From the IMG/VR virus record IMGVR_UViG_3300035703_000005, positions 184,836-248,835 of that record: DNA of 64,000 nt; one strand, 5' to 3'. The position numbers and the translations under genes were made by a program. Positions 11,012 to 35,261 of the stretch are shown here, piece by piece. The number at the start of each line of letters is the position of its first letter. The stretch's first letter is position 1. The notes under the pieces are model-generated. The model did not search any database. It was not told the DNA's origin and saw only the letters and a list, made by a program, of their open reading frames with translations.

Positions 11012-14000
11012 TTATAGATCTCTTGTTCTACTAATCATTGGTCCAGTCAACAACCCAACTAAACCATTATTTGTGTACACGTCAAATTGTTTTGGAGAAC
11101 CCAAAACTCTATTTTCATAATCAAAAATCTTGGACCAACTATATCTACCATAGAAATTATTAGTATTAATTCCCGTATTATTCTCACCTCGTTTATAAAC
11201 TTCAACATAATTACCAGTTGGTCCTTCAATTGGAGCAAAATTACAAGTTACTGTTACTATTCCTGATGCAGCATTTGTGACGTTTTCAACAATATAAACA
11301 CCATCCAAAAATTCAGTAGAAGTACCAACTCTAGAAGCTGGATAATTTGACATTCCACCTAGAGAAGTAGTAATACCAGTTAAAGCATGACCAACAGTTA
11401 CATTACTATTTGTAATTACAAAGTAGTCCCCTTTAGACAATTGACTGTAAGTAATACCAAAAGAATTCAATGATGAATATCCAATTCCAAGAGTGCTGTT
11501 ATCATAAAACTCAGATTTAAGAACGAATTCAACTTTTGGTGAAGTTGTTCCAATTCCAGGAGTTCCTGCAACAAAAGTATTAATACCAATTATCGTTCCA
11601 TAATCACCCATAACCTTAAATGATCTGACAAATTCAGTTTTTGGAGAATCTGGTTCAATAAGAACCGATGGTGCATTTGATTGGGAATATCCAAATCCAC
11701 CATTTATAATAGTAACTGAAGTAACAACTCCCGCAGTAACATTTGAAATAGCAGTAGCTCTATTATAAATTGGATCTGCATAAATTGATGTTCCAGAAGA
11801 TCCAACAAAAATGTATCTACCTTCCAATCCAATTTCATTGATAAATAAACCACTTCTTAAATTGTTAACTTGATTTGTTTCTCTTAGAACCCAATTTGAG
11901 AGATCGAAAGAATAGTATAAATTACCTAATGATGTCAATATCACATAAAAATCATTGTATGAAATGTCTATAATATCTTCGGAAATATTTGTAGTCACTA
12001 AATTAAATGTAAATGAATTTGTAGATTTAATAACTGTACCAAAATCACCAACGGCTACAAATTCACCATCAACATGAATAACTTTGTTTAAATTAGCAGT
12101 AGTTGGCGATAATAAATCTTCCCAAATTACTCCATTCACACTACTGAGTATTACAGAATCATTACCAACAGCAATAATATTTGATGGTCCGTAAGCCAAA
12201 CTATTGAGTGTTTGTAATGTTCCGGAGAATCTACTTATTAGTGTTGTCGTTCCAATACCAACTCCACTAAATATCGAACTTAATCCTACAACAACTACGG
12301 TATCTAGATATGAAGAATACGTAATATCAGATATTGGACCAGTATATCCAGCAGAAACTCTAGCAGTCACTCCGACAGTAGGAGTAACAATTTCTCTTAA
12401 AAGATTTATTGCACTCCAAGGTCCAATAGTATTACCTACAGAAACTGCAGTAGCAACAGTTCCATAAGATCCACCGACAAAATACCTATTTGTACCAACT
12501 CCAATTATAGAATTGTAACTTATAGTAATTCCGAATCCAACTGAACTGGCCTGCCAAGAACTTCCATTTAAACTGTATGCAAAGGTATCGTTATCTCCAA
12601 CGGCAACAACATATTTGCCCGTATAAGAAATGGAATTTAAATCATACAGAGATGATATTCCAGTACTTGGTTTCCAATCTTTAATTGGATCCTTTCTTGT
12701 TATTGAAGATCTAGAAATAGTAACTACAGGATTTCCTGTATAAGCATATCCAACACCACCATCAGAAATAACTATTGATGAGATTGAAGATGAAGAAGAA
12801 ACTACAGAAGTACAAATAGCATCCTCTGTTATTCTGTTTTCACCAATTACAAGATCTCTAAGATCTTCAGCTACAGAATCAACATCCGAAAATAATGGAT
12901 AAGCATTGTCGATGTATATTGACTCATCAGTTGGCACTATCTTTTTAATTACATGTGCGTTTGGTTTAACACGACTTCTAATGCTTGGTCTACTCTTAGA
13001 ATAAAGTGAACCACTTATAATTTTATCTTGAGTTTGTTTGATCCAAGTTAATGGTCTATCTTTAGTCGAATCAGTCGTTATACCTACACTATTATATGTG
13101 AATGTGTCAAATTGGTCTGATGATATTATTTTTTTAACAGTTCTATCAAATTGATCAATATCCAATAAATCATTTTTATTTTCTCTAATAATAATTACAT
13201 CACCTTCTTTTATAGTTTTAGGTGGTTCAATTTGCTCAACATCAATAGAAGAACCTCTATAGTATAAAATACTACATGTAGAATTTTCCTTTGGAGCTTC
13301 TTTAAATATTATTCTAGAACCAGAATATGTGTATGAAGATTCTGGAGTCTGTAGAACATCATTGATATAAACAAATATATTATTTGTGATGTTTAAATCA
13401 GAACCAGGTATAGTTCTCAAACTCAATATTTCTCTAACATTATTTGTGGTTACACTTAAAGTAAACTTCTTTCTAAAACCATTAAAATTTGAAGATATGT
13501 CATCAAATTTTATAAATTGACCAGGGTAAAATCCGTTAAATTTATCATTTTGGATTTCTTTTACAGTTAAAGTAAATTCTTCAAATGAAGTTGATAATCC
13601 AGGATTAGTTGTTATTCCAATTACAGATAATACATCACCAACTTTATATCCAATGCCAGGATTATCTATTTTAAATGATATGATACTTGATCCTTGACCT
13701 ACAGTTACTGATATTTTAGCGCCCTGGCCAACGCCAGAACTCCCGCCAGTGTACGCTACACCAAGATTACTATAAGATGTAGGAATACCAATAACAACCG
13801 TTGGTAGGGAGGTAGTAGTATACCCAGAACCAGCGTTTACAATAGTAAATCCAGTTACAGTACCACCAGCACCAACAGATGCAGTGATGCTAGCTCCAGA
13901 TCCAATTGTAGATGCAATACTGACATTTATATTTTGTCTGTATCCGGACCCAGCACCAGTCAAACTAATTGCAGAAATAGTTCCTGCGGCTGATACTGTT

Positions 14001-17000
14001 GCTACTGCTGATGCTGGCAACAATGGTGCATAACCAAATCCGGTTGTAATTGCAACTTTAGAAATTTTACCAGCACTAGGAGTTCCAGATAAAAATCTTA
14101 CCACATTTTCGGAATTACCATCTATATCATAATCAACTTTTGGTTCTTGGAAAACATTATTGATAATAACAAAAGGATTATTGTTGATCAATGAAGAATT
14201 GTTTACATTATTAAAAATAGTTGTGGTTGTCTGACCACCAGATTTTAAAGTAAATTCTGTTGCGGCAATTCCAGTGAAAGATAAAGAAATATCGTCAAAA
14301 ATGATATTTTTATCTACTGGTTTTGAGGGATCAAATCTTCTAGTAAATACTCTACCAGAAAAAATAGAACCAGTTTCAAGACCAACTGGGCCAATTTTTC
14401 CATATGGAGCTGTTGTAAAGTAAATAACGTCACCATCAATATAATAATCTCCATTAAATATCGTTGCAGAAGCTCCTACAGTATGAATTCCAGAAACGCT
14501 ATTAAAATAACCCCTCTCCACATTTACAAAATTTGTCGAACCTATACCTATATTTTTAACAAGTAAGTATTCGGAATTAATATTGATTACATCATTGACA
14601 GCTAATGATGAAATTCCAGAAGAAACCTCGATAACTGAAGTTGTAGCAGTGGAAATTGGAGAATTTAAGGTAATTGCCAAAGATTTTCTTCTTAATTGAG
14701 TTTGTATTATTCCATCAATGGTTATAATTGTAGAAGGAAGTGGATCTTTATATTTTAAAGAATGTATGCCAGATCCTAGTCCAACAATATCAAAAAATAT
14801 ACTAGTAGATAATCCAGAAACCCTAAAGTTATTATCATCAATTTTATTGACAAATAAAGTTCGTGGTAATTTATCTGTACCTAGTACTGAAGGCGTAAAC
14901 GAAATACTATCATCTGGAGAATTTCCGCCAATATATGTTCCAGAAATAGATACTACGGATGTAGAAGCATATCCAGATCCTCCATTTACGACTTGAATTA
15001 AAGAAACAAGTCCATCATTGTCTCGATAAACATTAAAAATAGCACCTAATCCATTAGCATCGGTAGATGGTAAATTTAAGTAACTATTATTAGCTTCAGT
15101 CTGTATTCCAGTTGGTGCAGTTGCAGTAATAGTAAAACTTAAATCATTTGCTGGCGTAGACCCCTTAAAATAAGTACCCGCTATTGAAACCACATCCCCG
15201 ACTTTAAATCCAGATCCACCAGAAACTAATGAAAGGGATGTTGATAGAGGTTGACCTGTTCCAACGTCATATGTAATAAGTGCATTAAATTTAGCATTAC
15301 TTCCACTAGTAGTACCAAATCCAATAACATTTAAAAATAGTTGGTTACTTATTCCAGCTGGAACAACTACTGTAGAAATTCCTGTTATAGGACTAGTAAC
15401 TGCTTGTGCATATCCATTTTCAAAGATTGCTGTACCATCATAGTTTCCTACTTGCATTATTACGTCCAAATCACCAACAGCATAAGATGTTGTAGCAATT
15501 CCTATAGGCGATCCAATTCCATAATCATAAATCAATTCTTGTCCAGATTGGAAATTATGATTTATTGATGTAAAAGCGTTATTGGAGATATTGACTATCG
15601 CACTATCGGATGAATCAAATTCATATTTAAATAATGGAGTTCCTTTATTTTTCAGTTTAAATGTAGTTAATCCTACTACTGATCCGCTCCTAGAAATACT
15701 TGGATATACAACATTGGGAGCAGCAGTAGTACCAATTCCAATAATGGATGTTACTATCCCAATATAATTACCAATTGCAGACCAAACATCAGAACAACAA
15801 TTTTCATTATAAGTAGGACTACAAGAAGTATCCGCCAATATCCTAGTGTCAAATTGTTGAGGTTCCGTAAATACAGGTATTTGATATGAAGTGGATATAG
15901 CTACATTATTAATAACGTATTTCGATAAGTCAATAATATACTTAAATCCAGCTATAGTTTCTTCAGACTCTCCAGCTACATATGAAGTACCCAATCCACT
16001 CCAGTAAGCCAATCCGGCCTCAACAGACTTGTTATTTGATTTGTATTTAATGTCATGTGAGATTGCATCAACAATAAATCCAACATCTCTTTTGCAAATC
16101 TCACGATCCCAATCTATATTTGTTGTTATACCAGGATAAGACGAAGTAATAAATCCAACCACTTCCTCCTGAATAAACGATCTATTCAATTCCAAAAGAT
16201 CGGATGCATCAGCATATCTTCCATCCAATTCTTGAATAGAAGTTCCATCAAATTGGTCACTAATATCATCTATTGTTATGACTTTATTTGTTTTGTTGAT
16301 AATGAAATTTCTTAAAGATATCCCACCACTCAAAAATACTCTTTCAACTGAACCATCATCTAAAAAATCTTCTTCATATACTATAGTAAAGTTATCTTTT
16401 TCATATAGTGACTTGTGAGAATCTATATTTACCAAGAATGAAGATTGTTTATCGAGAACAGATGGTTTTAAATTGGTTGTTCTACCGATTCCGTGTGTTG
16501 CTTTGGTATAAATTTCCAAATCAGAAAATTCTTTAAATCCGGATGGGTGTATAATAGATCTTACAGACTCTCTCCAAATATCATATGGAATTTCACTCTT
16601 AATTGAATATGAAAACTTCTGGTAATAAAAATTATCGGAAATTCTTTGATTAAAATCGTTTAAAATTCCAACAGAGTTATCAATAACTCCCACCTTATCT
16701 CTAAATGGACCTAAAGTAGATCTTAGATTGAAACTATCATGATACTCTACTGTGCCTGTTATTTTTGATACTTCGCCGGTAATTTTATCTCCCGTTCTCA
16801 ATTCACCAAAAGAATTATTGGTTCTTAATTGATTTAAATCATTATCCCATCCATCTTCCATGACAATGGAAGAAAACTTAGTTGAAGTTACTCTTTCTTT
16901 AGAAAAATATTTAACATCATCAGCTAAAATCATATCAAAAACTGGCATGTCTTTTTTGTTTACGACATATCCCAAAGTAACTCCATCATCATACGTACCA

Positions 17001-20000
17001 AAAAGACCGGTAGATATTCCAGTCATATCATAAGTAACAGTATTATTCTGACTACTTATTCCAACTACTTCAAAAAATCTATATTCATATGATGAAGAAT
17101 TGAAATTAGACTTCGATTTTGTATTTGGAGTAAGTCTACAACCTTCGATAAAAATTTGATCACCAATTTCAAATGGGAAGATAAAATCAGTTTTACCATA
17201 TCCTGTAGAAATTAATGGATTAGAATTTGAAGAGTTAGCGAGTTCTAATGTTACCAAATCTCCAGAAACACTAATAAAATCAATATCATACCCATTAGAA
17301 TTGTAAATCGGTATAATATCGAGAGGTTCTGATAAATTAGTTACATTTTGGACAACATCAACTTTTACTATTGAACCACCACTGAGTTGAGGCTGTAACT
17401 TAATTTCTGTATTTTCTTTTACAAATAAAGTTGGTGGAGTATTATAATTTTTACCTCCAGTGATAATACCAATGTAATCAATTCTTCTTATATCTTTAAT
17501 TCCTATAACACTTGGTACACTTAATACAGGAGATAGAGTTGGATCTGTTGGATAATCAAATCCATCTTTAATTCTTTCTAAAGACTCTACTTTTCCAATG
17601 TTGGGAGAATTTAATTTTATTACTGCATCCTTACCTCTTTCGGATATAATGTTACTGACATATGGTAATTTGTCATACTTTCTGCCAGAAAAATTAATCT
17701 TAAGACTTGATATTGGACCATAAGCAGTTTTAGAACTAGTCAGATATTCAATTGTAGAGGATGCATAAGAATTTTTTTCTAATTCGGTTGGTTTATTTTT
17801 TAAATTAAAATTAAATACTCTATCAGAAGATTTATTAATAATAAATTTGCTATTTAATATATGAGATTTCAAAACAACTTTATTATTACCAATTACATCC
17901 TTATCGGAAGTAATTTGATTTTTTCTTTCATCTATTGGACTCTTTGGTAATAAGTTATAGTAAAGTAATTTTGGAAATCCAGAGATAGAAGTATCCAAAT
18001 CTACATATGATCCAGGGAATCCTGCAGTACCATTTCTCGTAATTGCAAATCCTATTTCAGTATTTCCTATAATTTCTAATTTCTTTTGGAAATCAACGTC
18101 AGCATAAAATTCCAGATACATATCAAGAATACTTGCATCTGAAAGATCAAATCTAATTACATTCCCATCAACAAAATGGAATGGAGGGTTTATTAAATAA
18201 AATCCGTGAGATGATCCGCCAACAGAATTGATATTTACTACTACATTATTTTTTATGTCAACTCTATTTTTGCATAGTTTTACATTATCAAAATCCGTTT
18301 TTAAGATATAATATACTTCATTATTTTGCAATCCATCGGCAGGATTACTGGAAACATATACTACTTTATCACCAGTTTTTAAACTGGTATCAGTTAAGTC
18401 AATTTTATTCTCATTTATGTTAATATCTGAATTAGTAAATTCAATTCTTTCTCCAGTAATTTTCCTGATTTCTGGATTATATAATATTTTTACAGAGTCG
18501 GTTTGATTATTAAATATTTTTAGTTCTATTTCATCACCGGTTAACAAATTGTGGTCCGCAGTAGTCGTTACTATTCCAGTAAATCTTTCCAAAGTTGACG
18601 TAACTTGGAAATTTTTTGTGGTTAATGAATGTGAAGCGCCTACAGTATTTAAAATATCATCAAAATTTACAAACTCTACACAATTTAAAGTTGTTCCTAT
18701 CCCACCAACACTACTAGTAAATCCTATAGTGGATATTCCAATATAATCAACACCAAAATTTACTGCATATACTGTTTGACCTTCATCAAAAGATATAGAA
18801 GTGGCGGATCCTACATTATTATATTTGAGTGGTGTACCATTAAATCCGGAAAAATAAGTTAATGGTTGACCAGTGTAAAACTTATGGTTTGGTATATAGA
18901 TTGATTTTTGTGGAATAAATCTAGATTCTACGCTACTTGTACCAATACCAACCAAAGACCTTGTAACTCCAGCCGTACCTGTTCCAACTGACTCACTAGG
19001 ATTGAAAAATACAATTTCATTTAAAGTAATAGAGTCGGAATTTGATCGTTCAAGATCAAATGTAAACTCAGTTGGTAGTAATTTTACTACATCAATTCCG
19101 GCTGTATGAACGCCTGTATTTTGAATTCTATTAACATAAAATCCAGATCTTTCTGGGGAAACTCCCGTAATATGAAGAATTTCGGTGCCTATGCCAATGA
19201 AATCATTTGATTTAAACCCGGAAATATCTTTTACGGTTATAAAAGTAGAAAGTCCGGTCGTAACTTGATCTTGAATATCATTTAGAAGTTCAATAGTTTT
19301 GTCTAAAACACTTATTACATGACTACCTTCAATAGTCGATGACGTTATAGTCGAAACTCCAGTAAGAATAATAGTTTCATTATTAACTAATTGATGAGGT
19401 TCATCAGTTTTTCCAACTACTTTTCTTGATTTAATATCAAAGTTAACTTTTATAATTTTATTATCGACAATAGAAAACTGTAAAACATCAGACCCCTTAA
19501 CTTTTGAAACTACAATATTTGCTCCACTTCCAGAAGTATTTTTATTTTCAATTACTAATCTATCGTCAACTTGATAATCTCTACCAGCTGAGAAAATAGA
19601 AGTTGAAGTGATTCCAGAAAAATTAACTGTATCTATTCTAAATTCTTGTTTATAATCTTCAGAAACTCTATCAATCAAATCGTAATATGAATTATTAAAA
19701 TTTAAATAATATGGACCGACATTTCTAGTTATGTTAAAAGTGCCAATATCAAGATCCTGATTAAAAACTGGTAAAAAGTTTTCTTTAATTGGTTGGTCTT
19801 TAAAATATTCACCAATTACATACGGATATGATGGAACAGAATTTCCAGTTGGATCAATACTTATGGATGTAAAATACGCATAAATTCCATCTGGATATTG
19901 TGGCGTTAAACACCATCTTCCATTATATTCATCAAGATCTCCAGAGCCCGTATAAACATAATCGTTAATGAAATATCCAGGCTCAAATCCCTGTGGACGA

Positions 20001-23000
20001 ACAAGTGGATCAGTGTTTGCCCTTAATTCATAACTGGTTCTTATTTGTCTAATAGAACCTCCAGATAAAGGATCATATCCATATGGACCATAAATTGGAT
20101 TTCCATCATATGCAAATCCAAGAATAGGTGAATGAGAAAGAGTATTTAAGTTCTCAGAATTGGTATCTGTAAAGTTATCATTTAATTGGAATCTGAGTTT
20201 TTTGGGAATATAGAAATTTATAAATTCTAATCCAAAATCTGGATTTTTACTTGGGTATAGAATTCCATCGTCTTCATCAGAAATTGATGGAATTGACTTG
20301 ACAACCTGATTTATTTTCCATTCAAATACATTGCCTAAAAATTTTGCATCCGACCCTCTATTAACAACTGACATGGTTGTGTTTGAGGATGCATATCCAA
20401 CACCACCAGAAATAATATTTACTGATACAACTCTACCATCTTCTATAATTGGATCAATCTGAGCAAACTGACCATTTCCATTAATTATAATGTCAGAGTC
20501 TTTTCTATATCCTCTACCTCTGTTGATAATTTTAACATCTCTAACGGTTCCGTTAATAATGATTGGTTTTAATACACATTCAGATATTATACTGGAAAAT
20601 CCTACATTAGGTCTTCTATGGTAATTTACAATATCCGTGCATCCATAAGAAACTCCACCATCTTCCAAATAAACATCAGTTATTGAACCAAGAACTATTG
20701 GTTCTAATAATGGTTGAACAATATCGGTTGATCCAATAGCAGATAATGCTTCTACTGAAACAGTTATTGCTGGATAACCAATAGTGTGAGTTCCAAATCC
20801 CAAACTAGAAAATTCTACAAATATATTATCAATGTAATTATTCCTAGTAGATGTTGTACCAATTCCCGCTTCAGATAACTTAAATTTATTTTTGTCGATT
20901 ACTTTTACATAATACTGAATTTGAGTAGATAATCCTGCAATTGGAGTACCAGTAGTTGAGTATTCAACTAATTCACCATCAGAAAAACGATGATTTGTAG
21001 CACAAATATATGAATCAAAGGTATTAATTCCAATGTTATCTTTTAAACTTAAAATAGAAGGTACTTTTACTTTTCTGTTGGAATATCCTTTACCAGGATC
21101 TTTAACAAATACTTGAGTAATAGTATTTTTACTTTTAATAGTTTCTATAACATGGAATCCAGAACTAATTCCTACTATATCAACCTCATTTACTTTATTT
21201 ACTGCATCTTGAAAAGTGTTGAAAATTTTGATTGAATTTGAACTGGTAATTCCAACAAAATACCTAGAACCATCAACTAAACCACCAATATTACTATTTT
21301 GATTAGATCTATAAATTACTTCTTCAGCGTCATCAAAATTGTGATCATTTAAAAAAGTAATAACATTAGTCAAAGTGTTTACTGCAGACTCTGGTCTAAA
21401 TCCTACGGATATTCTGGATTTAATTAAATTGGATTCTAAAATACAACCAGATCCATTTCCACCAGATATTGTAATTTTTGGTTTTGTTTGATAACCAATT
21501 CCTGGAGTTATTACTTTAACTGATTTTACTTCACCGACTAAATTGACATGTGCTTTCGCTCTAGATCCAGTATCGTCTTTAATTTCTAAAGGAGCAACAT
21601 TAATTACATCATAATTTTTACCAGAATTTGTAACATCAATAGAAACTAATTTTCCATAGTAAATGTTTTCATCAAAAAGAGTAGGAGATAATAATTCAAC
21701 TCCATTAGCCAAAAGTCCTACGGCTCTATTATTAGTTGTCCTATCATTTTTGTCATCAAAAACATTAAAAGCTCTGTTTAATCTAAACTTTTTTAATAAT
21801 TTTTGATTCTTTATTGTTTTATTCTCATATCCAGACTTGAAAAATCTATCGGATGAGATTCCAGAATTAAAACTTATATATTTTTTGGAAAAAAGATCAG
21901 TATTACTATAAGATAATTTAATATTATTATTATTGAGTTTAGTTACAAAATAATACCCTGTAGAAATTCCAGAAAAATTGCTGGAAATTGGATCATAATA
22001 AATTGAATCACCAGTGACTAAATTATGATTTTGTGAAAATAGTGTATCTGTAATGCCTGCTCCAGAACTAGAAGCATTTTTTTCCGTATTCTCTATGAAA
22101 AGAGTATAATTAGGTAGTCCTGTAGATGTTACATAGAAATTAGAATCTTCAGAATCTACATATGTATTCTGAACTCCTGATGGAATTTTTGAAAGTCCAT
22201 CAAAAAATCCACGATTATGATTTGCTTTATAAATTATCTTTTTTACAACTTTAGAATTTAAAAGATTAAATGTTGGATTTAAAGCCTGAACTACTAATCT
22301 GTTAGAATATTTTCTAATTGTATCTCCAGGATCAAATTCTACAGAAATTATAGAAACATTGGAAGAATTGTTAATTCCATCATCTAGTTTAATAATTTCA
22401 TCTTTATAAAAAGAGACTTTATCGTAGAGAACAACTCTAAATTTATTTGCGTCTAACTGAGAAACATTTTTTATTATGTGATTTGTAGGAATATTATAAA
22501 TCCAAGAATTAAATTGGAAAGAATCACTTAAATCTTTTCCGAATCCAGAAAGAGTAACTTTATCTCCTACTTTTAAATTAGAAGTTTTGGAAAAATCTAT
22601 AGAATCTATAACATTTACAATTCGGAAGTCTACTCTCGACGTATTTCCAAATCCAATATAACTAAAAGCAAATTTTTCTTCAACAATATCTAATCCATAG
22701 TCAAGATCTCTATCAATTCCAGTAACTCCTAAGAATTGATTATTTGTTTTATCCGAATAAAACAATTCTATTGTATTATAATTTTTGGGAGTTACTAAAA
22801 TTTTACCAGATTTGGAAAATCCAATGGTAGAGTCAACAAGAATAGTATCAGAATTTTTTGGAACACTCTCTAAAATTTTAGTTTTACCAGCAACTTGAAA
22901 TGCTCCTGATAATGAGGTCGAATCCAAAGAAATTTCGTATAAATTTTTATTTCTTAGTGGTCTAAATTCTACGTTAAAAATAGAAGCACTTACAGTTCCA

Positions 23001-23800
23001 ACACCACTAACATTTTGGAATAAAAAATTACCTCTAATTTGAGTAGGATCACCACCTGAAATTTTTTCTACTAATATATTCTTTGTAGTAAAATATGAAT
23101 TTGAAGATGGGATTATAGTAAAATCTTGAGGTTTAATAATTTCAATATCTTTATTATATAAAATTTTGAAAAGAATTTTATACGAAGTATCCGTTCCTTT
23201 AGACGTATAAAAATCTTTTGCTCGAATTAAAATATTTTTTACAGAAAGTTCGTCTACAAAATTTCTTGATTCAAATCCAGGTAAAAATTCAGATTTATAC
23301 TTTTCAAAAAATTCTTTGATAAAAAGATTACTTAAATTTTCTACAACAGAACCAGATGGATGTTCTGAAGCTTCAGTAGAAGAGAATGTTAAAAATTTGG
23401 AATCATCGACAGATTTTATTTTATCTATTCCACTAAAACCTCTAACACAATCTACAAATGAATTGGAAGTTTTTTCTTTGTAAGTAATAATCTCATTATT
23501 GATTTTCAACAACCCATAGGAGTCTGGCCAACCTTCAGTAGAATCGACATGTATTACATCATCAAAACTTAAAATCTCAGAAGTAGTTTGTGCAGAGGAA
23601 TTTAAGTTTGAAAAAGTAAAATTATCAATATTTTTATAACTAGGTAAATTTATTGATAAATCAATAGCTCCAGAAAAATGTTCTAAAGAATTATAGTATT
23701 CGGAAAGAAAAGCTTTAAAAAGTGGAGATTCCTCTGTCAAAAACTCAGGAATTTGAGACTGGAGGATATTATCGATTTTTACCTTTTTAGTGTTGGACAT
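11012..23800 (-). CDS. gp7: giant baseplate wedge initiator (gp7-like) with YHYH-type domain and beta-propeller repeats
   Basis: 4262 aa between gp6 and gp8; N-term ILQSQIPEFL..FLSEYYNSLE, FYTSKGT; many GxGY repeats; HSPILGFAYDGNPIYGPYG and DLDEYNGR..TPQYPDGIYAYF. Confidence 0.75.
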   Translation of the reverse strand: MSNTKKVKIDNILQSQIPEFLTEESPLFKAFLSEYYNSLEHFSGAIDLSINLPSYKNIDNFTFSNLNSSAQTTSEILSFDDVIHVDSTEGWPDSYGLLKINNEIITYKEKTSNSFVDCVRGFSGIDKIKSVDDSKFLTFSSTEASEHPSGSVVENLSNLFIKEFFEKYKSEFLPGFESRNFVDELSVKNILIRAKDFYTSKGTDTSYKILFKILYNKDIEIIKPQDFTIIPSSNSYFTTKNILVEKISGGDPTQIRGNFLFQNVSGVGTVSASIFNVEFRPLRNKNLYEISLDSTSLSGAFQVAGKTKILESVPKNSDTILVDSTIGFSKSGKILVTPKNYNTIELFYSDKTNNQFLGVTGIDRDLDYGLDIVEEKFAFSYIGFGNTSRVDFRIVNVIDSIDFSKTSNLKVGDKVTLSGFGKDLSDSFQFNSWIYNIPTNHIIKNVSQLDANKFRVVLYDKVSFYKDEIIKLDDGINNSSNVSIISVEFDPGDTIRKYSNRLVVQALNPTFNLLNSKVVKKIIYKANHNRGFFDGLSKIPSGVQNTYVDSEDSNFYVTSTGLPNYTLFIENTEKNASSSGAGITDTLFSQNHNLVTGDSIYYDPISSNFSGISTGYYFVTKLNNNNIKLSYSNTDLFSKKYISFNSGISSDRFFKSGYENKTIKNQKLLKKFRLNRAFNVFDDKNDRTTNNRAVGLLANGVELLSPTLFDENIYYGKLVSIDVTNSGKNYDVINVAPLEIKDDTGSRAKAHVNLVGEVKSVKVITPGIGYQTKPKITISGGNGSGCILESNLIKSRISVGFRPESAVNTLTNVITFLNDHNFDDAEEVIYRSNQNSNIGGLVDGSRYFVGITSSNSIKIFNTFQDAVNKVNEVDIVGISSGFHVIETIKSKNTITQVFVKDPGKGYSNRKVKVPSILSLKDNIGINTFDSYICATNHRFSDGELVEYSTTGTPIAGLSTQIQYYVKVIDKNKFKLSEAGIGTTSTRNNYIDNIFVEFSSLGFGTHTIGYPAITVSVEALSAIGSTDIVQPLLEPIVLGSITDVYLEDGGVSYGCTDIVNYHRRPNVGFSSIISECVLKPIIINGTVRDVKIINRGRGYRKDSDIIINGNGQFAQIDPIIEDGRVVSVNIISGGVGYASSNTTMSVVNRGSDAKFLGNVFEWKINQVVKSIPSISDEDDGILYPSKNPDFGLEFINFYIPKKLRFQLNDNFTDTNSENLNTLSHSPILGFAYDGNPIYGPYGYDPLSGGSIRQIRTSYELRANTDPLVRPQGFEPGYFINDYVYTGSGDLDEYNGRWCLTPQYPDGIYAYFTSISIDPTGNSVPSYPYVIGEYFKDQPIKENFLPVFNQDLDIGTFNITRNVGPYYLNFNNSYYDLIDRVSEDYKQEFRIDTVNFSGITSTSIFSAGRDYQVDDRLVIENKNTSGSGANIVVSKVKGSDVLQFSIVDNKIIKVNFDIKSRKVVGKTDEPHQLVNNETIILTGVSTITSSTIEGSHVISVLDKTIELLNDIQDQVTTGLSTFITVKDISGFKSNDFIGIGTEILHITGVSPERSGFYVNRIQNTGVHTAGIDVVKLLPTEFTFDLERSNSDSITLNEIVFFNPSESVGTGTAGVTRSLVGIGTSSVESRFIPQKSIYIPNHKFYTGQPLTYFSGFNGTPLKYNNVGSATSISFDEGQTVYAVNFGVDYIGISTIGFTSSVGGIGTTLNCVEFVNFDDILNTVGASHSLTTKNFQVTSTLERFTGIVTTTADHNLLTGDEIELKIFNNQTDSVKILYNPEIRKITGERIEFTNSDININENKIDLTDTSLKTGDKVVYVSSNPADGLQNNEVYYILKTDFDNVKLCKNRVDIKNNVVVNINSVGGSSHGFYLINPPFHFVDGNVIRFDLSDASILDMYLEFYADVDFQKKLEIIGNTEIGFAITRNGTAGFPGSYVDLDTSISGFPKLLYYNLLPKSPIDERKNQITSDKDVIGNNKVVLKSHILNSKFIINKSSDRVFNFNLKNKPTELEKNSYASSTIEYLTSSKTAYGPISSLKINFSGRKYDKLPYVSNIISERGKDAVIKLNSPNIGKVESLERIKDGFDYPTDPTLSPVLSVPSVIGIKDIRRIDYIGIITGGKNYNTPPTLFVKENTEIKLQPQLSGGSIVKVDVVQNVTNLSEPLDIIPIYNSNGYDIDFISVSGDLVTLELANSSNSNPLISTGYGKTDFIFPFEIGDQIFIEGCRLTPNTKSKSNFNSSSYEYRFFEVVGISSQNNTVTYDMTGISTGLFGTYDDGVTLGYVVNKKDMPVFDMILADDVKYFSKERVTSTKFSSIVMEDGWDNDLNQLRTNNSFGELRTGDKITGEVSKITGTVEYHDSFNLRSTLGPFRDKVGVIDNSVGILNDFNQRISDNFYYQKFSYSIKSEIPYDIWRESVRSIIHPSGFKEFSDLEIYTKATHGIGRTTNLKPSVLDKQSSFLVNIDSHKSLYEKDNFTIVYEEDFLDDGSVERVFLSGGISLRNFIINKTNKVITIDDISDQFDGTSIQELDGRYADASDLLELNRSFIQEEVVGFITSSYPGITTNIDWDREICKRDVGFIVDAISHDIKYKSNNKSVEAGLAYWSGLGTSYVAGESEETIAGFKYIIDLSKYVINNVAISTSYQIPVFTEPQQFDTRILADTSCSPTYNENCCSDVWSAIGNYIGIVTSIIGIGTTAAPNVVYPSISRSGSVVGLTTFKLKNKGTPLFKYEFDSSDSAIVNISNNAFTSINHNFQSGQELIYDYGIGSPIGIATTSYAVGDLDVIMQVGNYDGTAIFENGYAQAVTSPITGISTVVVPAGISNQLFLNVIGFGTTSGSNAKFNALITYDVGTGQPLSTSLSLVSGGSGFKVGDVVSIAGTYFKGSTPANDLSFTITATAPTGIQTEANNSYLNLPSTDANGLGAIFNVYRDNDGLVSLIQVVNGGSGYASTSVVSISGTYIGGNSPDDSISFTPSVLGTDKLPRTLFVNKIDDNNFRVSGLSTSIFFDIVGLGSGIHSLKYKDPLPSTIITIDGIIQTQLRRKSLAITLNSPISTATTSVIEVSSGISSLAVNDVININSEYLLVKNIGIGSTNFVNVERGYFNSVSGIHTVGASATIFNGDYYIDGDVIYFTTAPYGKIGPVGLETGSIFSGRVFTRRFDPSKPVDKNIIFDDISLSFTGIAATEFTLKSGGQTTTTIFNNVNNSSLINNNPFVIINNVFQEPKVDYDIDGNSENVVRFLSGTPSAGKISKVAITTGFGYAPLLPASAVATVSAAGTISAISLTGAGSGYRQNINVSIASTIGSGASITASVGAGGTVTGFTIVNAGSGYTTTSLPTVVIGIPTSYSNLGVAYTGGSSGVGQGAKISVTVGQGSSIISFKIDNPGIGYKVGDVLSVIGITTNPGLSTSFEEFTLTVKEIQNDKFNGFYPGQFIKFDDISSNFNGFRKKFTLSVTTNNVREILSLRTIPGSDLNITNNIFVYINDVLQTPESSYTYSGSRIIFKEAPKENSTCSILYYRGSSIDVEQIEPPKTIKEGDVIIIRENKNDLLDIDQFDRTVKKIISSDQFDTFTYNSVGITTDSTKDRPLTWIKQTQDKIISGSLYSKSRPSIRSRVKPNAHVIKKIVPTDESIYIDNAYPLFSDVDSVAEDLRDLVIGENRITEDAICTSVVSSSSSISSIVISDGGVGYAYTGNPVVTISRSSITRKDPIKDWKPSTGISSLYDLNSISYTGKYVVAVGDNDTFAYSLNGSSWQASSVGFGITISYNSIIGVGTNRYFVGGSYGTVATAVSVGNTIGPWSAINLLREIVTPTVGVTARVSAGYTGPISDITYSSYLDTVVVVGLSSIFSGVGIGTTTLISRFSGTLQTLNSLAYGPSNIIAVGNDSVILSSVNGVIWEDLLSPTTANLNKVIHVDGEFVAVGDFGTVIKSTNSFTFNLVTTNISEDIIDISYNDFYVILTSLGNLYYSFDLSNWVLRETNQVNNLRSGLFINEIGLEGRYIFVGSSGTSIYADPIYNRATAISNVTAGVVTSVTIINGGFGYSQSNAPSVLIEPDSPKTEFVRSFKVMGDYGTIIGINTFVAGTPGIGTTSPKVEFVLKSEFYDNSTLGIGYSSLNSFGITYSQLSKGDYFVITNSNVTVGHALTGITTSLGGMSNYPASRVGTSTEFLDGVYIVENVTNAASGIVTVTCNFAPIEGPTGNYVEVYKRGENNTGINTNNFYGRYSWSKIFDYENRVLGSPKQFDVYTNNGLVGLLTGPMISRTRDL

Positions 23801-28463: not shown

Positions 28464-28730
28464 CTACACTTTTGCAATTGCAATATATTCGAGATTATTT
28501 TGAATATATCCCTCATTTTTTGCTGATACAACTAAATCAGATTTATTTGTAAATCCAATGCGTTTTCCTTCTTCCAATTTATCACGCACATAAGAATACA
28601 TAATCATATCAATTTGTTTAGTTGTAATATTATCAATTATTTTTTGAACCGCTTCTTGAATATCGGAGTTTCTACTAAAAACTTCTAAGGCTATTACTTG
28701 TGCTTCGGTTAAAGTAACAATGCATTCCAT
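28464..28730 (-). CDS. hypothetical protein
   Basis: 88-aa ORF with ATAAATA late-type motif upstream. Confidence 0.55.
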   Translation of the reverse strand: MECIVTLTEAQVIALEVFSRNSDIQEAVQKIIDNITTKQIDMIMYSYVRDKLEEGKRIGFTNKSDLVVSAKNEGYIQNNLEYIAIAKV

Positions 28731-28860
28731 GAATAATACTTTTATATTTCAAAATATTTATTTTTAATTTACTTTGATGGGGGTAAAAAATTACCAAAAA
28801 AATTTTTGAATCGAAAGAGGCTTTATGAGCGCTTTTTGGGGTCGTTATAGATTAGGGTAG

Positions 28861-28901
28861 TTAGCGTTTTTTCAAACGGGGGCCACCGCGCCCCGCGCTA
28901 A
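28861..28901 (-). terminator. GC-rich hairpin at the early/late boundary, probable terminator
   Basis: CGGGG/CCCCG stem nested in TTAGCG/CGCTAA; followed by TTTG on minus strand. Confidence 0.45.
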
Positions 28902-29027
28902 CACAAACGCCCCGCCACATAACTGCTCAAACTGCTCATAAGCTCACGAACACCGCTGCTCGTTCTCCGATGTATTCGTGTCCCCTCCAAGTGCTCATAA
29001 GCCTCAGAGGGGACGCTACATAAACTC

Positions 29028-29252
29028 TCACACAGCCTTAGAGCACTTGTTGTTCTTGGTGACTGCAGCTGCATCACTGATAGCACCATGCAGGAATGCC
29101 CCTTTAGGAGCAGCATTCGCCCAAGCCCTCTGACCCGTGAGTGCTTTCACACCGCGACGGGAGGGCTTAAGCACAGTGTACTTAATCTGCCCCTGAACAT
29201 CAGCGACCAGCAGTTCGAGTTTGGTAGCAGTTGCGATGTTGATGGTGCTCAT
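29028..29252 (-). CDS. small early protein
   Basis: MSTINIATATKLELLVADVQGQIKYTVLKPSRRG...; start reassigned to the ATG at 29252. Confidence 0.6.
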   Translation of the reverse strand: MSTINIATATKLELLVADVQGQIKYTVLKPSRRGVKALTGQRAWANAAPKGAFLHGAISDAAAVTKNNKCSKAV

Positions 29253-29312
29253 GATGTTGTTAGCGAAGTGTGTGTGGTGAGTGTAGACGAATGTGAAGAG
29301 CTTATGTAACAA

Positions 29313-29573
29313 TCAATCACGAAGCTCTTGGATCATTTCATCCAGCTCAATGTGGTTCAGCTCAGGGTCATTCCAGAGTACACCATCAGGGGTGCAGCTC
29401 TTACCGAAATCATCAATCATAAGCTCTTGGAACTCGGCATAATCATCACACTGCAGAGCAATGCTGTAGAAACCATAATCATTGCCAATCCACAGAGCAA
29501 CATTCCAGGTCTCATAATTGCTCCAACCGTTGTAGGTCTCTTGTGCAAGCTTGGGCTGGAAGGTGGTGGTCAT
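29313..29573 (-). CDS. conserved cyanophage early protein (YNGWSNYETWNVALWI family)
   Basis: Recognisable motif; GAGGA SD in the repeat leader supports the start at 29573. Confidence 0.7.
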   Translation of the reverse strand: MTTTFQPKLAQETYNGWSNYETWNVALWIGNDYGFYSIALQCDDYAEFQELMIDDFGKSCTPDGVLWNDPELNHIELDEMIQELRD

Positions 29574-29580
29574 GTGTGTT

Positions 29581-29654
29581 CCTCTCAACATGGCTAAGAT
29601 ACCCCATCTGGCTACCCCATGGCATCATCTGTGGCCAGTTATTAAGCTGTCCAC
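29581..29654 (-). promoter_or_regulatory. early promoter cassette (TATCTT -10, AGCCATGTTGAGAG leader, two-box operator)
   Basis: + strand CCTCTCAACATGGCTAAGATAC ... GTGGCCAG-N8-CTGTCCAC. Confidence 0.75.
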
Positions 29655-29771
29655 TATTCACTCAGTTGTCAAGGTTCTATGGTAGGCTCATGATCCTTTG
29701 TGGCTTGAGCTTTACTTAAGCTTTCTTAAGCGGCTTAAGCACTCAGCCCCTTTATGCACTCCCACAGAGTT

Positions 29772-29801
29772 ATTATAAGCCATTCAGAGGGCTTATGTCA
29801 A
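29772..29801 (-). promoter_or_regulatory. consensus sigma70 promoter (leftward)
   Basis: TTGACA (29801-29796), 18 nt, TATAAT (29777-29772). Confidence 0.75.
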
Positions 29802-29837
29802 GCATGAGGATTAGAGCCCTTAGAGTGCTCATAAGGC

Positions 29838-29879
29838 TGTGGAAAACTTATAGACTTTTTCCACAAGTGTTGTGGAAAA
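29838..29879. promoter_or_regulatory. DnaA-box triplet 1
   Basis: TTTTCCACA at 29838-29846 (-), 29857-29865 (+), 29871-29879 (-). Confidence 0.8.
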
Positions 29880-29947
29880 CTTATAAGAACTGTGAGACCT
29901 TATGTGTAGCAAACTGTGTGGGTTCTGAGATTTATGTCCGGGTGCCA

Positions 29948-29976
29948 TTGACATTTTAGCGGTCGTGTGATAGCCT
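29948..29976 (+). promoter_or_regulatory. sigma70 promoter (rightward, antisense to all genes)
   Basis: TTGACA (29948-29953), 17 nt, TAGCCT (29971-29976) with an extended -10 TG. Confidence 0.7.
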
Positions 29977-29983
29977 GCCCGCT

Positions 29984-30111
29984 AAGATCACAAGGTCTCA
30001 GAGGCTTTTCAAGGGTGCTAACACAAGGTCTCAGAGGGCTTTAAGACTCTAGAAGCACCCTAAACTCACATGGCTTTGCGAAAGAAAGCTTTAACAAAGC
30101 CATGTTTTTTT
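29984..30111 (+). ncRNA. putative ~128-nt small RNA
   Basis: Downstream of the + promoter; AGGGTGCT/AGCACCCT stem; 16-nt direct repeat; ends in an 11-bp hairpin ACATGGCTTTG/CAAAGCCATGT plus T7; no convincing ORF. Confidence 0.6.
30068..30111 (+). terminator. intrinsic terminator
   Basis: 11-bp stem 30068-30078/30095-30105 followed by a run of T to 30111. Confidence 0.75.
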
Positions 30112-30131
30112 AGCCATTTATTTTAAGCCCT

Positions 30132-30165
30132 TTTTCCACAGCTTTTTCCACAGCGTTGTGGAAAA
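30132..30165. promoter_or_regulatory. DnaA-box triplet 2
   Basis: TTTTCCACA at 30132-30140 (+), 30144-30152 (+), 30157-30165 (-). Confidence 0.8.
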
Positions 30166-30250
30166 GCTATCATAACTCATTGTTAGCAACTCTCGGAGCA
30201 CTAGTAGTATGTAACTCCACTCCTCTCTAGGTGTTGTTTCCGTTGAGAGC

Positions 30251-30403
30251 TTAGGGGTCATAACTCTCTAACTCTACAGCCCCTTGAGCATAATCATCAT
30301 AGAACAGCTCATCCTCTGTGTGATTAGCATAGTGATCCATGATCTCTTGCTCAAAGTCAAAGAAGCTTTCTTCCCCGATAGGGTGAGCGTTAGCGATGTT
30401 CAT
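30251..30403 (-). CDS. small acidic early protein
   Basis: Hand-translated 50 aa MNIANAHPIGEESFFDFEQEIMDHY...; ATGA overlap with the upstream gene. Confidence 0.55.
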   Translation of the reverse strand: MNIANAHPIGEESFFDFEQEIMDHYANHTEDELFYDDYAQGAVELESYDP

Positions 30404-30585
30404 TTATTCCTCCTGGTGTTGTATTCTCCGAGATTCTCTACATAAACCTCGTTGACACTTTCGTTACCTTTGAGTTCCAGAAGCTCACGCCAATTCCATT
30501 CCTTTGGACTGACACAATTTGTAGCATCAACTGTGAAGTCAAGAGTAACTCTGTAGCGCGTAACTTTGTCGTTGATTGTTTGCAT
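30400..30585 (-). CDS. small early protein
   Basis: 61 aa, RYRVTLDFTVD...PKEWNWRELL. Confidence 0.6.
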   Translation of the reverse strand: MQTINDKVTRYRVTLDFTVDATNCVSPKEWNWRELLELKGNESVNEVYVENLGEYNTRRNK

Positions 30586-30905
30586 TGTGCGATGTCCTTT
30601 GAGTGTAACAAACTACGTAGCTATTTTATACTGTTTGAGGGTTTAAGTCAACAAAATTGTCATACTTTGACAACACTTCATTGATGACTTGATCTGTGAA
30701 ATAATCCACGATTTCATCATACATGAAGCTAATAGTTTCAGGTGAATAATTGTTCACCCAATTCGCTGAGATAAATGTTACTTCGGCTGATGGCATGATT
30801 CTTGAAAGTATTGTGCATAGCTTGGATTGAAACAACTGTCCCGCCATGTGGCGAAGATCAGTAGAGTCGTGGGAACGATTGCGATAGCAAATAGATGGCG
30901 TTTTT

Positions 30906-31106
30906 TCATGAGTTGTTAATCAGATCTTGTTCAATCTGTTGGAGCATGTTTTCTGTCCAAGCTTGAGGATCTGCGACACCATTGTTTGCGTAGAGTTGAC
31001 TATACCGTAGACCATAAAGATCTGGGTTTAGGTGTTGCAACTCTTCAAGAGTTTGAGCAATCCGAACCTGTAGAATGTAGTCGTCAATCATGATGCAAAA
31101 TGTCAA
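30906..31106 (-). CDS. small early protein
   Basis: 66-aa minus-strand ORF tiling the cassette. Confidence 0.55.
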   Translation of the reverse strand: MTFCIMIDDYILQVRIAQTLEELQHLNPDLYGLRYSQLYANNGVADPQAWTENMLQQIEQDLINNS

Positions 31107-31402
31107 TCATTTTTTGATGGTAAGCATCAGCGAGTTGCACAACATTATGAGATTGAGTAGGATCTTCAATCTCGTATTGTGTCATCTCAAGAGCAAAAAT
31201 GACGGTGGAGAGTAACTCTTGCAACTGTTCAAGCTTTTGAGTTTCAGTCATCATTTGGATTCACCTCTTTGAGAACTTGAGTGAACAATTCAATCGCAGC
31301 TTCGTTGCAGTTGTCTTTCTTCATTCGGTAAATGTAGAACTCCAATGCTTCAGTGATAGCTTCTTGTTTGAGTTCTTCCCAGGTTGGCTTTGTCATGATA
31401 AT

Positions 31403-31606
31403 TCAAGCCAAGATTGCGGACTTCATTTCAACATTGCGGATTTCCATCCGAGCATAATCATACCCCTCAACTTCCGTCAGTTGTTGATAGTATGCTTCAG
31501 CCGTAGAACGACAATCAAACAAGCAGAGAGAATCAAAGCTTTCGCCTTCATAATTCCAACCACCGATCACAGCATAAACTTGCACGAGGTTTGCTCCGTT
31601 GTTCAT
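31403..31606 (-). CDS. small early protein (leaderless)
   Basis: MNNGANLVQVYAVIGGWNYEGESFDSL...; ATG 7 nt after the TATCTT -10. Confidence 0.65.
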   Translation of the reverse strand: MNNGANLVQVYAVIGGWNYEGESFDSLCLFDCRSTAEAYYQQLTEVEGYDYARMEIRNVEMKSAILA

Positions 31607-32371: not shown

Positions 32372-32539
32372 TCAGTCAAAAACAACAGGCTTGAAGTCAT
32401 CCGCATAACAATTAGCAAAAGCTGATGCGATGGTGACACAATCAAAGACACCAAGTTGCTCACCGTTGCGAACAGCAACCCACATAGGCTTGCGGGTCTC
32501 AAGATCAGCGCAGGGAAGAAAGTTGGTTGCGTTGGTCAT
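32372..32539 (-). CDS. small early protein
   Basis: First gene after a class A promoter; MTNATNFLPCAD... Confidence 0.6.
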   Translation of the reverse strand: MTNATNFLPCADLETRKPMWVAVRNGEQLGVFDCVTIASAFANCYADDFKPVVFD

Positions 32540-32548
32540 TTGCGTTTG

Positions 32549-32619
32549 TCTCAACATGGCTAAGATACCAGAACTGGCTGGTCGTGGCGCGATCAGTGGA
32601 CAGCCGCTCAACTGTCACA
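32549..32619 (-). promoter_or_regulatory. class A early promoter cassette
   Basis: TCTCAACATGGCTAAGATACC ... GTGGACAG-CCGCTCAA-CTGTCACA. Confidence 0.8.
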
Positions 32620-34461: not shown

Positions 34462-34470
34462 TGGTTTGAT

Positions 34471-34544
34471 TCCTCTCAACATGGCTAAGATACAGGGCCC
34501 CAGCCCCCTTTGGCGGGTTTGGTGGACAGCCGCCCAACTGGCCT
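34471..34544 (-). promoter_or_regulatory. class A early promoter cassette
   Basis: TCCTCTCAACATGGCTAAGATAC ... TTGGCG ... GTGGACAG-N8-CTGGCCT. Confidence 0.8.
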
Positions 34545-34906: not shown

Positions 34907-35181
34907 ACCAGTTGAAGTTGGGGTGCAGGTTGAACACTAAAAGTACCAAGCCGATCGCAAGAGATGCTCACTGCGTTTGCAGGTGCTCCCAGTTCATCAA
35001 CAACATCCCAGAAATCTTCTCCTTCTTCAATGACAACATAACCGAACACACCGGCGATGGGCATAGATTGAATGCCCCATCGTTCGGCTGAGCGTTGGGT
35101 ATCCCACCAAGTACGCTCATTCCAGAACATGTTAGGCTCATCATTGCGAGGGCCAAAAGTGATGCAGATAAACTTGCTCAT
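34903..35181 (-). CDS. small early protein
   Basis: MSKFICITFGPRNDEPNMFWNERTWWD...; first gene of the cassette. Confidence 0.6.
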   Translation of the reverse strand: MSKFICITFGPRNDEPNMFWNERTWWDTQRSAERWGIQSMPIAGVFGYVVIEEGEDFWDVVDELGAPANAVSISCDRLGTFSVQPAPQLQLV

Positions 35182-35190
35182 GGGTGTTTG

Positions 35191-35261
35191 TCTCAACATG
35201 GCTAAGATACAGGATCTGGCTGGGTTTGGCGGGATCAGTGGACAGCCCACCAACTGGCACA
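35191..35261 (-). promoter_or_regulatory. class A early promoter cassette
   Basis: TCTCAACATGGCTAAGATAC ... GTGGACAG-CCCACCAA-CTGGCACA. Confidence 0.8.

Follow-up and report, generated by a model that had tools for sequence, protein, structure and literature searches.

Predicted docking sites for the host initiator DnaA in a non-coding control region of cyanophages

A virus of marine cyanobacteria carries, in a gene-free control region, two tight clusters of perfect binding sites for DnaA, the replication-initiator protein of its host. One of the clusters is laid out like a known bacterial DnaA-regulating element, and such clusters recur in more than a hundred related viral contigs, suggesting that these viruses probably tap the replication switch of the host in a way for which no description was found. 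The sites were first noted in a sequence-only reading of a 64,000-nucleotide stretch (hereafter the window) of the 248,835-bp IMG/VR contig IMGVR_UViG_3300035703_000005, and that observation is confirmed. The window contains exactly six copies of the 9-mer TTTTCCACA, and no other copy occurs in the 64 kb. Dinucleotide shuffles give a mean of 1.55 copies per 64 kb, corresponding to about 0.008 expected in 330 bp. A count of the loose consensus TTWTNCACA, which had been proposed in advance as a check, returns 12 copies against 12.5 expected, and copies with one mismatch are likewise at chance level (41 found, 38 expected), with none of the latter in the locus. The signal is therefore six perfect sites in two clusters and nothing else.

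The window is a T4-like Synechococcus myovirus, for which blastn hits are only Synechococcus phages and cyanophages, with S-SCSM2R as the nearest isolate. All genes around the locus run leftward, and the stretch 29598-30399 is the longest internal region with no ORF of 60 aa or more. The intergenic gap proper spans 29592-30250, between early genes at 29313-29591 (-) and 30251-30403 (-), of which the former encodes a 92-aa protein (DUF7249/phrog_871; function unknown) and the latter a 50-aa protein. Pfam and PHROGs assign the flanking proteins only to families of unknown function, and an Rfam scan of 28500-31500 at E<=1 found nothing. The non-coding region is better conserved than its neighbors: in the relative denoted L187 it is nearly identical apart from a 33-bp deletion, while the flanking genes are 74-88% identical.

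The first cluster consists of box 1a at 29838-29846 (-), which lies 10 bp left of box 1b at 29857-29865 (+), and box 1c at 29871-29879 (-), which forms with 1b a convergent pair across the 5-bp spacing of DARS boxes I and II. Box 1a is conserved in the relatives L016/L030 and L187. [quoted passage not shown] A consensus leftward sigma70-type promoter (29772-29801 (-), TTGACA-18-TATAAT, 12 of 12 positions) lies upstream of the 29313-29591 gene and is conserved in L016, L187, and S-SCSM2R. A rightward promoter-like site (29948-29976 (+), TTGACA-17-TAGCCT) has no ORF downstream, points at the T-rich block and the second triplet, and is conserved in S-CAM9 and S-SCSM2R. It is followed by two copies of a repeat of about 21 nt spaced 33 nt apart (29989-30042 (+), CACAAGGTCTCAGAGG...), by a hairpin with a 10-bp stem and T7 (30069-30111 (+)), terminator-like on the plus strand in this phage only, and by a T-rich block (30101-30131 (+), CATGTTTTTTTAGCCATTTATTTT...) about 19 nt upstream of box 2a. 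Triplet 1 thus sits between the two divergent promoters, and triplet 2 just beyond the T-rich block. The hairpin, which has a 16-nt loop, was missed by an automated terminator scan and was read by eye and folded (139 nt, -46 kcal/mol, z -3.7); as it is not conserved even in the close relative L016, the idea of a conserved small RNA was dropped.

The assignment of the 9-mer as a DnaA box, made in the sequence-only reading, is supported. TTTTCCACA falls within the general consensus TTWTNCACA and is the phylum-wide cyanobacterial DnaA box (PMC4009838; PMC4674748), probes of which were used in gel shifts with DnaA domain IV (PMC4674748). Binding by the DnaA of marine Synechococcus was not assayed here, and no origin from these hosts was compared, as no cyanobacterium was among the loci listed from the genome and metagenome collections scanned. 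One candidate with dnaN nearby (L162, 63% GC) has directly beside the boxes a gene read, by eye only, as recF (dnaN-recF order) and was not taken for a cyanobacterial origin. In E. coli, ChIP-seq and mutagenesis show that DnaA binds in vivo to "double boxes" 2 or 3 bp apart and that one extra base pair abolishes binding (PMC11317965). Boxes 2a and 2b satisfy this rule, as do 28 distinct viral triplets, in which the direct spacer is 3 bp in 20 and 2 bp in 8 and never 4, although 4 was allowed by the search. The E. coli sites pair one strong with one weak box in cellular promoters, whereas the phage sites are two perfect boxes plus an inverted third.

Comparison with the three-box DARS cores, also raised in the sequence-only reading, holds in its geometry. 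The cores were read directly from E. coli MG1655, in which DARS1 is TTATCCACT, 5 bp, TGTGGATAA, 3 bp, TGTGTATTA, and DARS2 has the same 5 and 3 spacing, in agreement with the published description of boxes I and II opposed across 5 bp with box III head-to-tail with II (PMC6868365). Triplet 2, read on the minus strand, is box-4-inverted box-3-inverted box. Across the 28 viral triplets the inverted spacer is 4 bp in 18, 5 bp in 9, and 6 bp in 1. The phage element differs from DARS in that all three of its boxes are perfect, whereas in DARS1 only box II is, in that the inverted spacer is 4 bp more often than 5, and in that it is joined, in T4-like cyanophages, to a promoter and a T-rich block. 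No IHF or Fis flank of the kind found in DARS2 is known for it, although such sites were not sought, and release of ADP from ADP-DnaA was not measured. DARS is, furthermore, a chromosomal regulatory locus of the host cell cycle, whereas the phage element lies on a lytic phage genome inside an early promoter region.

Absence of the boxes from related phages had been named beforehand as grounds for rejecting a function, but the clusters prove to be strongly conserved. The exact triplet occurs in S-PM2, S-RIM32, and S-CAM3 and in 32 IMG/VR contigs, all cyanophage-like and drawn from three lineages. About 29 share proteins with cyanomyoviruses, two (L009 and L034) resemble S-EIVl, and one (L006) resembles the siphovirus S-CBS4 and carries the triplet near its ribonucleotide reductase genes. 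In the 28 distinct triplets the boxes are invariant while the spacer sequences vary, and within 1.2 kb of the triplets there are 117 boxes, compared to 1 in the remaining 240 kb of those loci, where about 5 are expected; the 9-mer is the unit under selection. The whole S-PM2d genome (186.7 kb) has one triplet and five scattered single boxes, the triplet lying about 7.6 kb upstream of gp25, a position similar to that in the window. RefSeq tRNA features that overlie the S-PM2 triplet are an annotation error, as ARAGORN finds no tRNA there.

A wider scan for any convergent box pair yielded at least 116 new loci, of which at least 73 are cyanomyovirus-like. In the latter, convergent spacers fall only in bands of 3-6, 12-16, 20-21, and 24-26 bp, and direct spacers in 2-4 and 10-14 bp, a periodicity of roughly one helical turn that points to binding on one face of the helix. 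Many of these loci are related to one another, and the counts are therefore not independent events. The triplet also occurs in cells. In Acidobacteria, Clostridia, and Bacilli it lies directly upstream of dnaA within arrays of 8-12 boxes, and elsewhere it stands alone as a three-box cluster, for example just after ftsK in Pyrinomonadaceae. The geometry is thus a general way of docking DnaA and not a cyanophage oddity.

In T4-like cyanophages the boxes end a polar, non-coding unit. A T-rich block (pattern [CT]AT[AG]T5-8[AT]A) occurs 41 times in the 33 kb near boxes against 27 times in 885 kb elsewhere, a 40-fold enrichment, although only 28 of 99 cyanomyovirus-like loci have the block by this strict pattern. 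Of 28 such blocks near boxes, 25 have boxes only downstream of the T-run strand, and in 23 of those 25 the nearest box is forward-oriented, at 8-13 or 19-22 nt. In 20 of 26 such loci a promoter-like site (TTGAC[AT], about 17 nt, then TAAGNC or TAGCCT) lies 22-137 nt upstream on the same strand, compared to about 0.6 expected by chance. The intervening stretch varies in length and sequence, with one repeat copy in L187, two in the window, and four related units in S-CAM9, which argues that the act of transcription matters rather than the RNA product. S-SCSM2R keeps both promoters and the T-rich block but has no DnaA box, and S-CAM9 keeps the rightward promoter and the repeats, also without a box. 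The boxes are therefore dispensable, an accessory added to an older non-coding unit, and DnaA cannot be the core of whatever that unit does. The S-EIVl-like and S-CBS4-like phages carry the triplet without the block or this promoter, so that the common denominator across lineages is the triplet alone.

The interpretation offered in the sequence-only reading, which hedged between an oriC mimic that loads host DnaA, sequestration or alteration of DnaA, and coupling of the flanking promoters to host DnaA state, is only partly supported, and the oriC mimic is not supported as worded. In three real origins examined for comparison, a forward box pair is followed downstream by an AT-rich stretch, preceded by CTA trios in two (L260 and L056) and directly adjoining the boxes in the third (L140). 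In the phages the T-rich block lies upstream of the forward pair, and no trio arrays were seen in the window locus or in the block-bearing loci. AT content around the mixed set of viral triplets is symmetric, with only the specific T-rich pattern giving a signal. A GC-skew switch, suggested at the outset as a test for an origin, is absent from the window, and cumulative skew is monotonic over the whole S-PM2d genome, although this evidence is weak because skew in these genomes follows gene direction. The mixture of strong and weak boxes typical of oriC gives no clear answer: no one-mismatch box lies in the window locus or near the S-PM2d triplet, but many 14-16 nt spacers in other cyanophage contigs hold a degenerate middle box. 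The sequence analysis narrows the options without choosing among them.

The preferred explanation is that the unit is a promoter-plus-unwinding-block replication origin of the T4 oriF/oriG or T7 primary-origin kind, with DnaA as an accessory in cis. In those origins an orphan or early promoter fires into an AT-rich block tens of nucleotides downstream and the product RNA has no conserved sequence, an arrangement matched by the promoter-like site and block of the window; they carry no DnaA boxes, however, and the T4 origin promoters are MotA-dependent middle promoters, whereas the phage site is of the -35/-10 type. In this view, DnaA bound 8-22 nt beyond the T-run would halt the incoming RNA polymerase at the block and/or help to open it, such that the short transcript can start the first round of phage DNA synthesis, tying early phage replication to the state of host DnaA. 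Triplet 1 would add further DnaA to the same complex. The sites, their geometry, conservation, and helical phasing, and their linkage to the promoter and the block are established by the analysis, whereas DnaA binding, although very likely (near 0.85), and everything downstream of binding are inferred. The origin role is held only tentatively, at a probability of about 0.35. No experiment of any kind supports origin activity here, priming and replication initiation at the locus were not mapped, and an oligo-U:dA hybrid makes a poor R-loop or primer and looks more like a release site. The boxless relatives, the lack of a skew switch, the position of the block relative to that in real origins, and the bare triplets of the other lineages also weigh against it.

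The same architecture might instead act on transcription only, as a DnaA-gated terminator or insulator, a possibility considered doubtful but the closest competitor. Polymerase from the orphan promoter would stall against bound DnaA with its active site on the U-tract and release the transcript, while read-through when DnaA is scarce would make antisense RNA against the upstream early genes; the same barrier would separate the two leftward early operons. The fixed polarity and short, helically phased distance between T-run and first box fit a roadblock placed ahead of a weak hybrid, DnaA roadblocks to elongating polymerase are described in E. coli (PMC11317965), and isolated cellular triplets also sit about 45 nt downstream of a promoter-like site with the same polarity. 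This model gives no reason, however, for the orphan promoter to exist at all or for boxless relatives to keep promoter and block, a good hairpin terminator already precedes the boxes in the window, and the triplets of other lineages lack the block. Action in trans on host DnaA, somewhat less likely again, would have the triplet strip ADP from DnaA in the manner of a DARS core, so that it reloads ATP, or serve as a high-affinity sink as phage DNA multiplies, in either case resetting or shutting down host chromosome initiation. The match to both DARS cores (PMC6868365), recurrence of the triplet by itself in three unrelated cyanophage lineages and as isolated clusters in many cellular genomes, and the perfection of all boxes, as expected for binding that does not depend on the bound nucleotide, favor this reading, as do the bare triplets of the S-EIVl-like and S-CBS4-like phages, and a catalytic element would work from a single infecting genome. 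Conversely, DARS activity is not known outside E. coli and its relatives and is unknown in cyanobacteria, only box II is a perfect consensus in E. coli, the tight cis linkage in T4-like phages is unexplained, and the benefit to a lytic phage is unclear. As for a datA-type sink, strong boxes are present but few per genome, and titration or ATP hydrolysis was not measured, which leaves that role undecided; 3-9 sites per genome would matter only late in infection, when host initiation is probably irrelevant.

A strict oriC mimic, in which DnaA would oligomerize from the boxes, melt an adjacent element, and load a helicase, is very unlikely on the evidence above, even though perfect boxes cluster beside an AT-rich block and Cyanothece oriC has just three such boxes, including a direct pair 2 bp apart (PMC4674748). 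Equally improbable is a role unrelated to a replication or transcription device of DnaA, whether binding of another phage or host protein, DNA or RNA hairpins, or tethering of the genome to membrane-bound DnaA, as proposed for the T5 injection-stop region. The convergent pair is a perfect 9-bp inverted repeat and folds as single-stranded DNA, but the stems are invariant and never show compensatory changes, indicating sequence recognition rather than structure, and the 9-mer also occurs as direct pairs and single copies. Its identity to the host DnaA box, its adherence to the DnaA spacing rule, and the presence of the same triplet upstream of dnaA genes make coincidence unlikely.

Full-text searches for DnaA boxes or replication origins in cyanophages found nothing relevant, although an early mention in the S-PM2 genome paper is not excluded. 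The nearest precedent is the set of DnaA-box pairs, also 3 bp apart, in the conserved, repeat-rich, non-coding injection-stop (iss) region of lytic T5-like phages, the role of which is likewise only hypothesized (bioRxiv 10.1101/866236). T5 has eight boxes, about half of them degenerate, inside inverted repeats of the terminal repeat, whereas the cyanophage clusters have 3-9 perfect boxes, include the inverted third box, and lie in the early-gene region. Phage-borne DnaA-box clusters are therefore known, and what is new here is their DARS-core geometry, helical phasing, and defined promoter/T-block partner. An unlikely but not excluded extension is that cyanophages of at least three unrelated lineages have each taken up a working DARS-type element, with which a single infecting genome would catalytically reset the nucleotide state of host DnaA or use DnaA as a licensing factor for its own first round of replication. 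This would be the first viral element that manipulates the bacterial initiator through DNA sequence alone, and would imply that DARS-like three-box units are widespread well beyond E. coli.

How T4-like cyanophages start replication, and whether these major agents of cyanobacterial mortality in the ocean sense or manipulate the replication state of the host, is not described in the literature searched. A conserved, sharply defined DNA element with nine-base sites, fixed spacings, and fixed polarity, together with natural boxless relatives as controls, makes both questions directly testable. The isolated three-box clusters of this geometry in Acidobacteria, Clostridia, and other phyla hint that DARS-like units may be far more widespread than currently known. 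The element is also a natural experiment on DnaA geometry, showing the same two spacing rules worked out in E. coli, a double box at 2-3 bp and an inverted box at about 5 bp, in a different phylum and on viruses.

The G+C content of the window is 28-35% over the giant structural genes (1-26000) and 38-47% over the small-gene region (28000-50000), with the step between them lying at about 26-28 kb. Two giant leftward ORFs, of 2501 and 4262 aa, are found at 1870-9375 and 11012-23800, respectively, and are comparable in size to the giant ORFs in the baseplate/structural region of S-PM2d. Within the small-gene region, the stretch just upstream of and across the start codon of gene 29313-29591 (29555-29605) recurs at three other places in the window, at 32531-32579, 34470-34493, and 35174-35221, and has the appearance of a repeated early-gene leader cassette.

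Repeats are also a feature of the non-coding sequence near the DnaA boxes. The unit beginning CACAAGG, located at 29989-30042 in the window and present as well in the related viral locus L187 and at 2570-2660 of locus L005, varies in copy number, with one copy in L187, two in the window and in its close relative L016, and four related units in S-CAM9. The S-CBS4-like contig L006 likewise has CACAAGGGCCC... repeats beside its triplet of boxes. In phage loci L002, L003, L004, L017, L019, L027, L035, and L036, an inverted repeat lies between the two divergent promoters, about 40 nt upstream of the rightward -35 element. This repeat appears to change on both arms between phages (TGTGCCAC..GTGGCACA in one form and TGTGACAC..GTGTCA in another), a pattern that would suit a hairpin or a dimer operator. 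In the cyanomyovirus-like IMG/VR loci (L284-L399), spacers between convergent boxes fall in bands about 10 bp apart, and the motif TTAACAC or GTGTTAA recurs in both the spacers and the flanks, where it may represent a weak DnaA site or the site of a second factor. The RefSeq record of S-PM2 shows tRNA-Leu and tRNA-Asn over the triplet (L002 2432-2588, corresponding to NC_006820.1 19177-19333), but ARAGORN finds no tRNA in that locus, and record LN828717 places these tRNAs at 155.6-155.8 kb. The RefSeq coordinates are misplaced.

Three-box clusters with DARS geometry are not confined to viral sequences. Among the cellular genome loci examined (L038, L040, L041, L042, L044, L050, L052, L075, and others), isolated clusters of this type occur in Acidobacteria and also in a delta-proteobacterial and a Heliomicrobium MAG. 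They sit about 45 nt downstream of a conserved GTGTGCAAAATGCTAGAAG-like site, which is a reversed fourth box (TTTTGCACA) abutting an extended -10-like element. In two of these loci, L044 and L075, the cluster lies just after ftsK, with the promoter-like site pointing back at that gene. These arrangements may be DARS-like or DnaA-gated units outside Proteobacteria.
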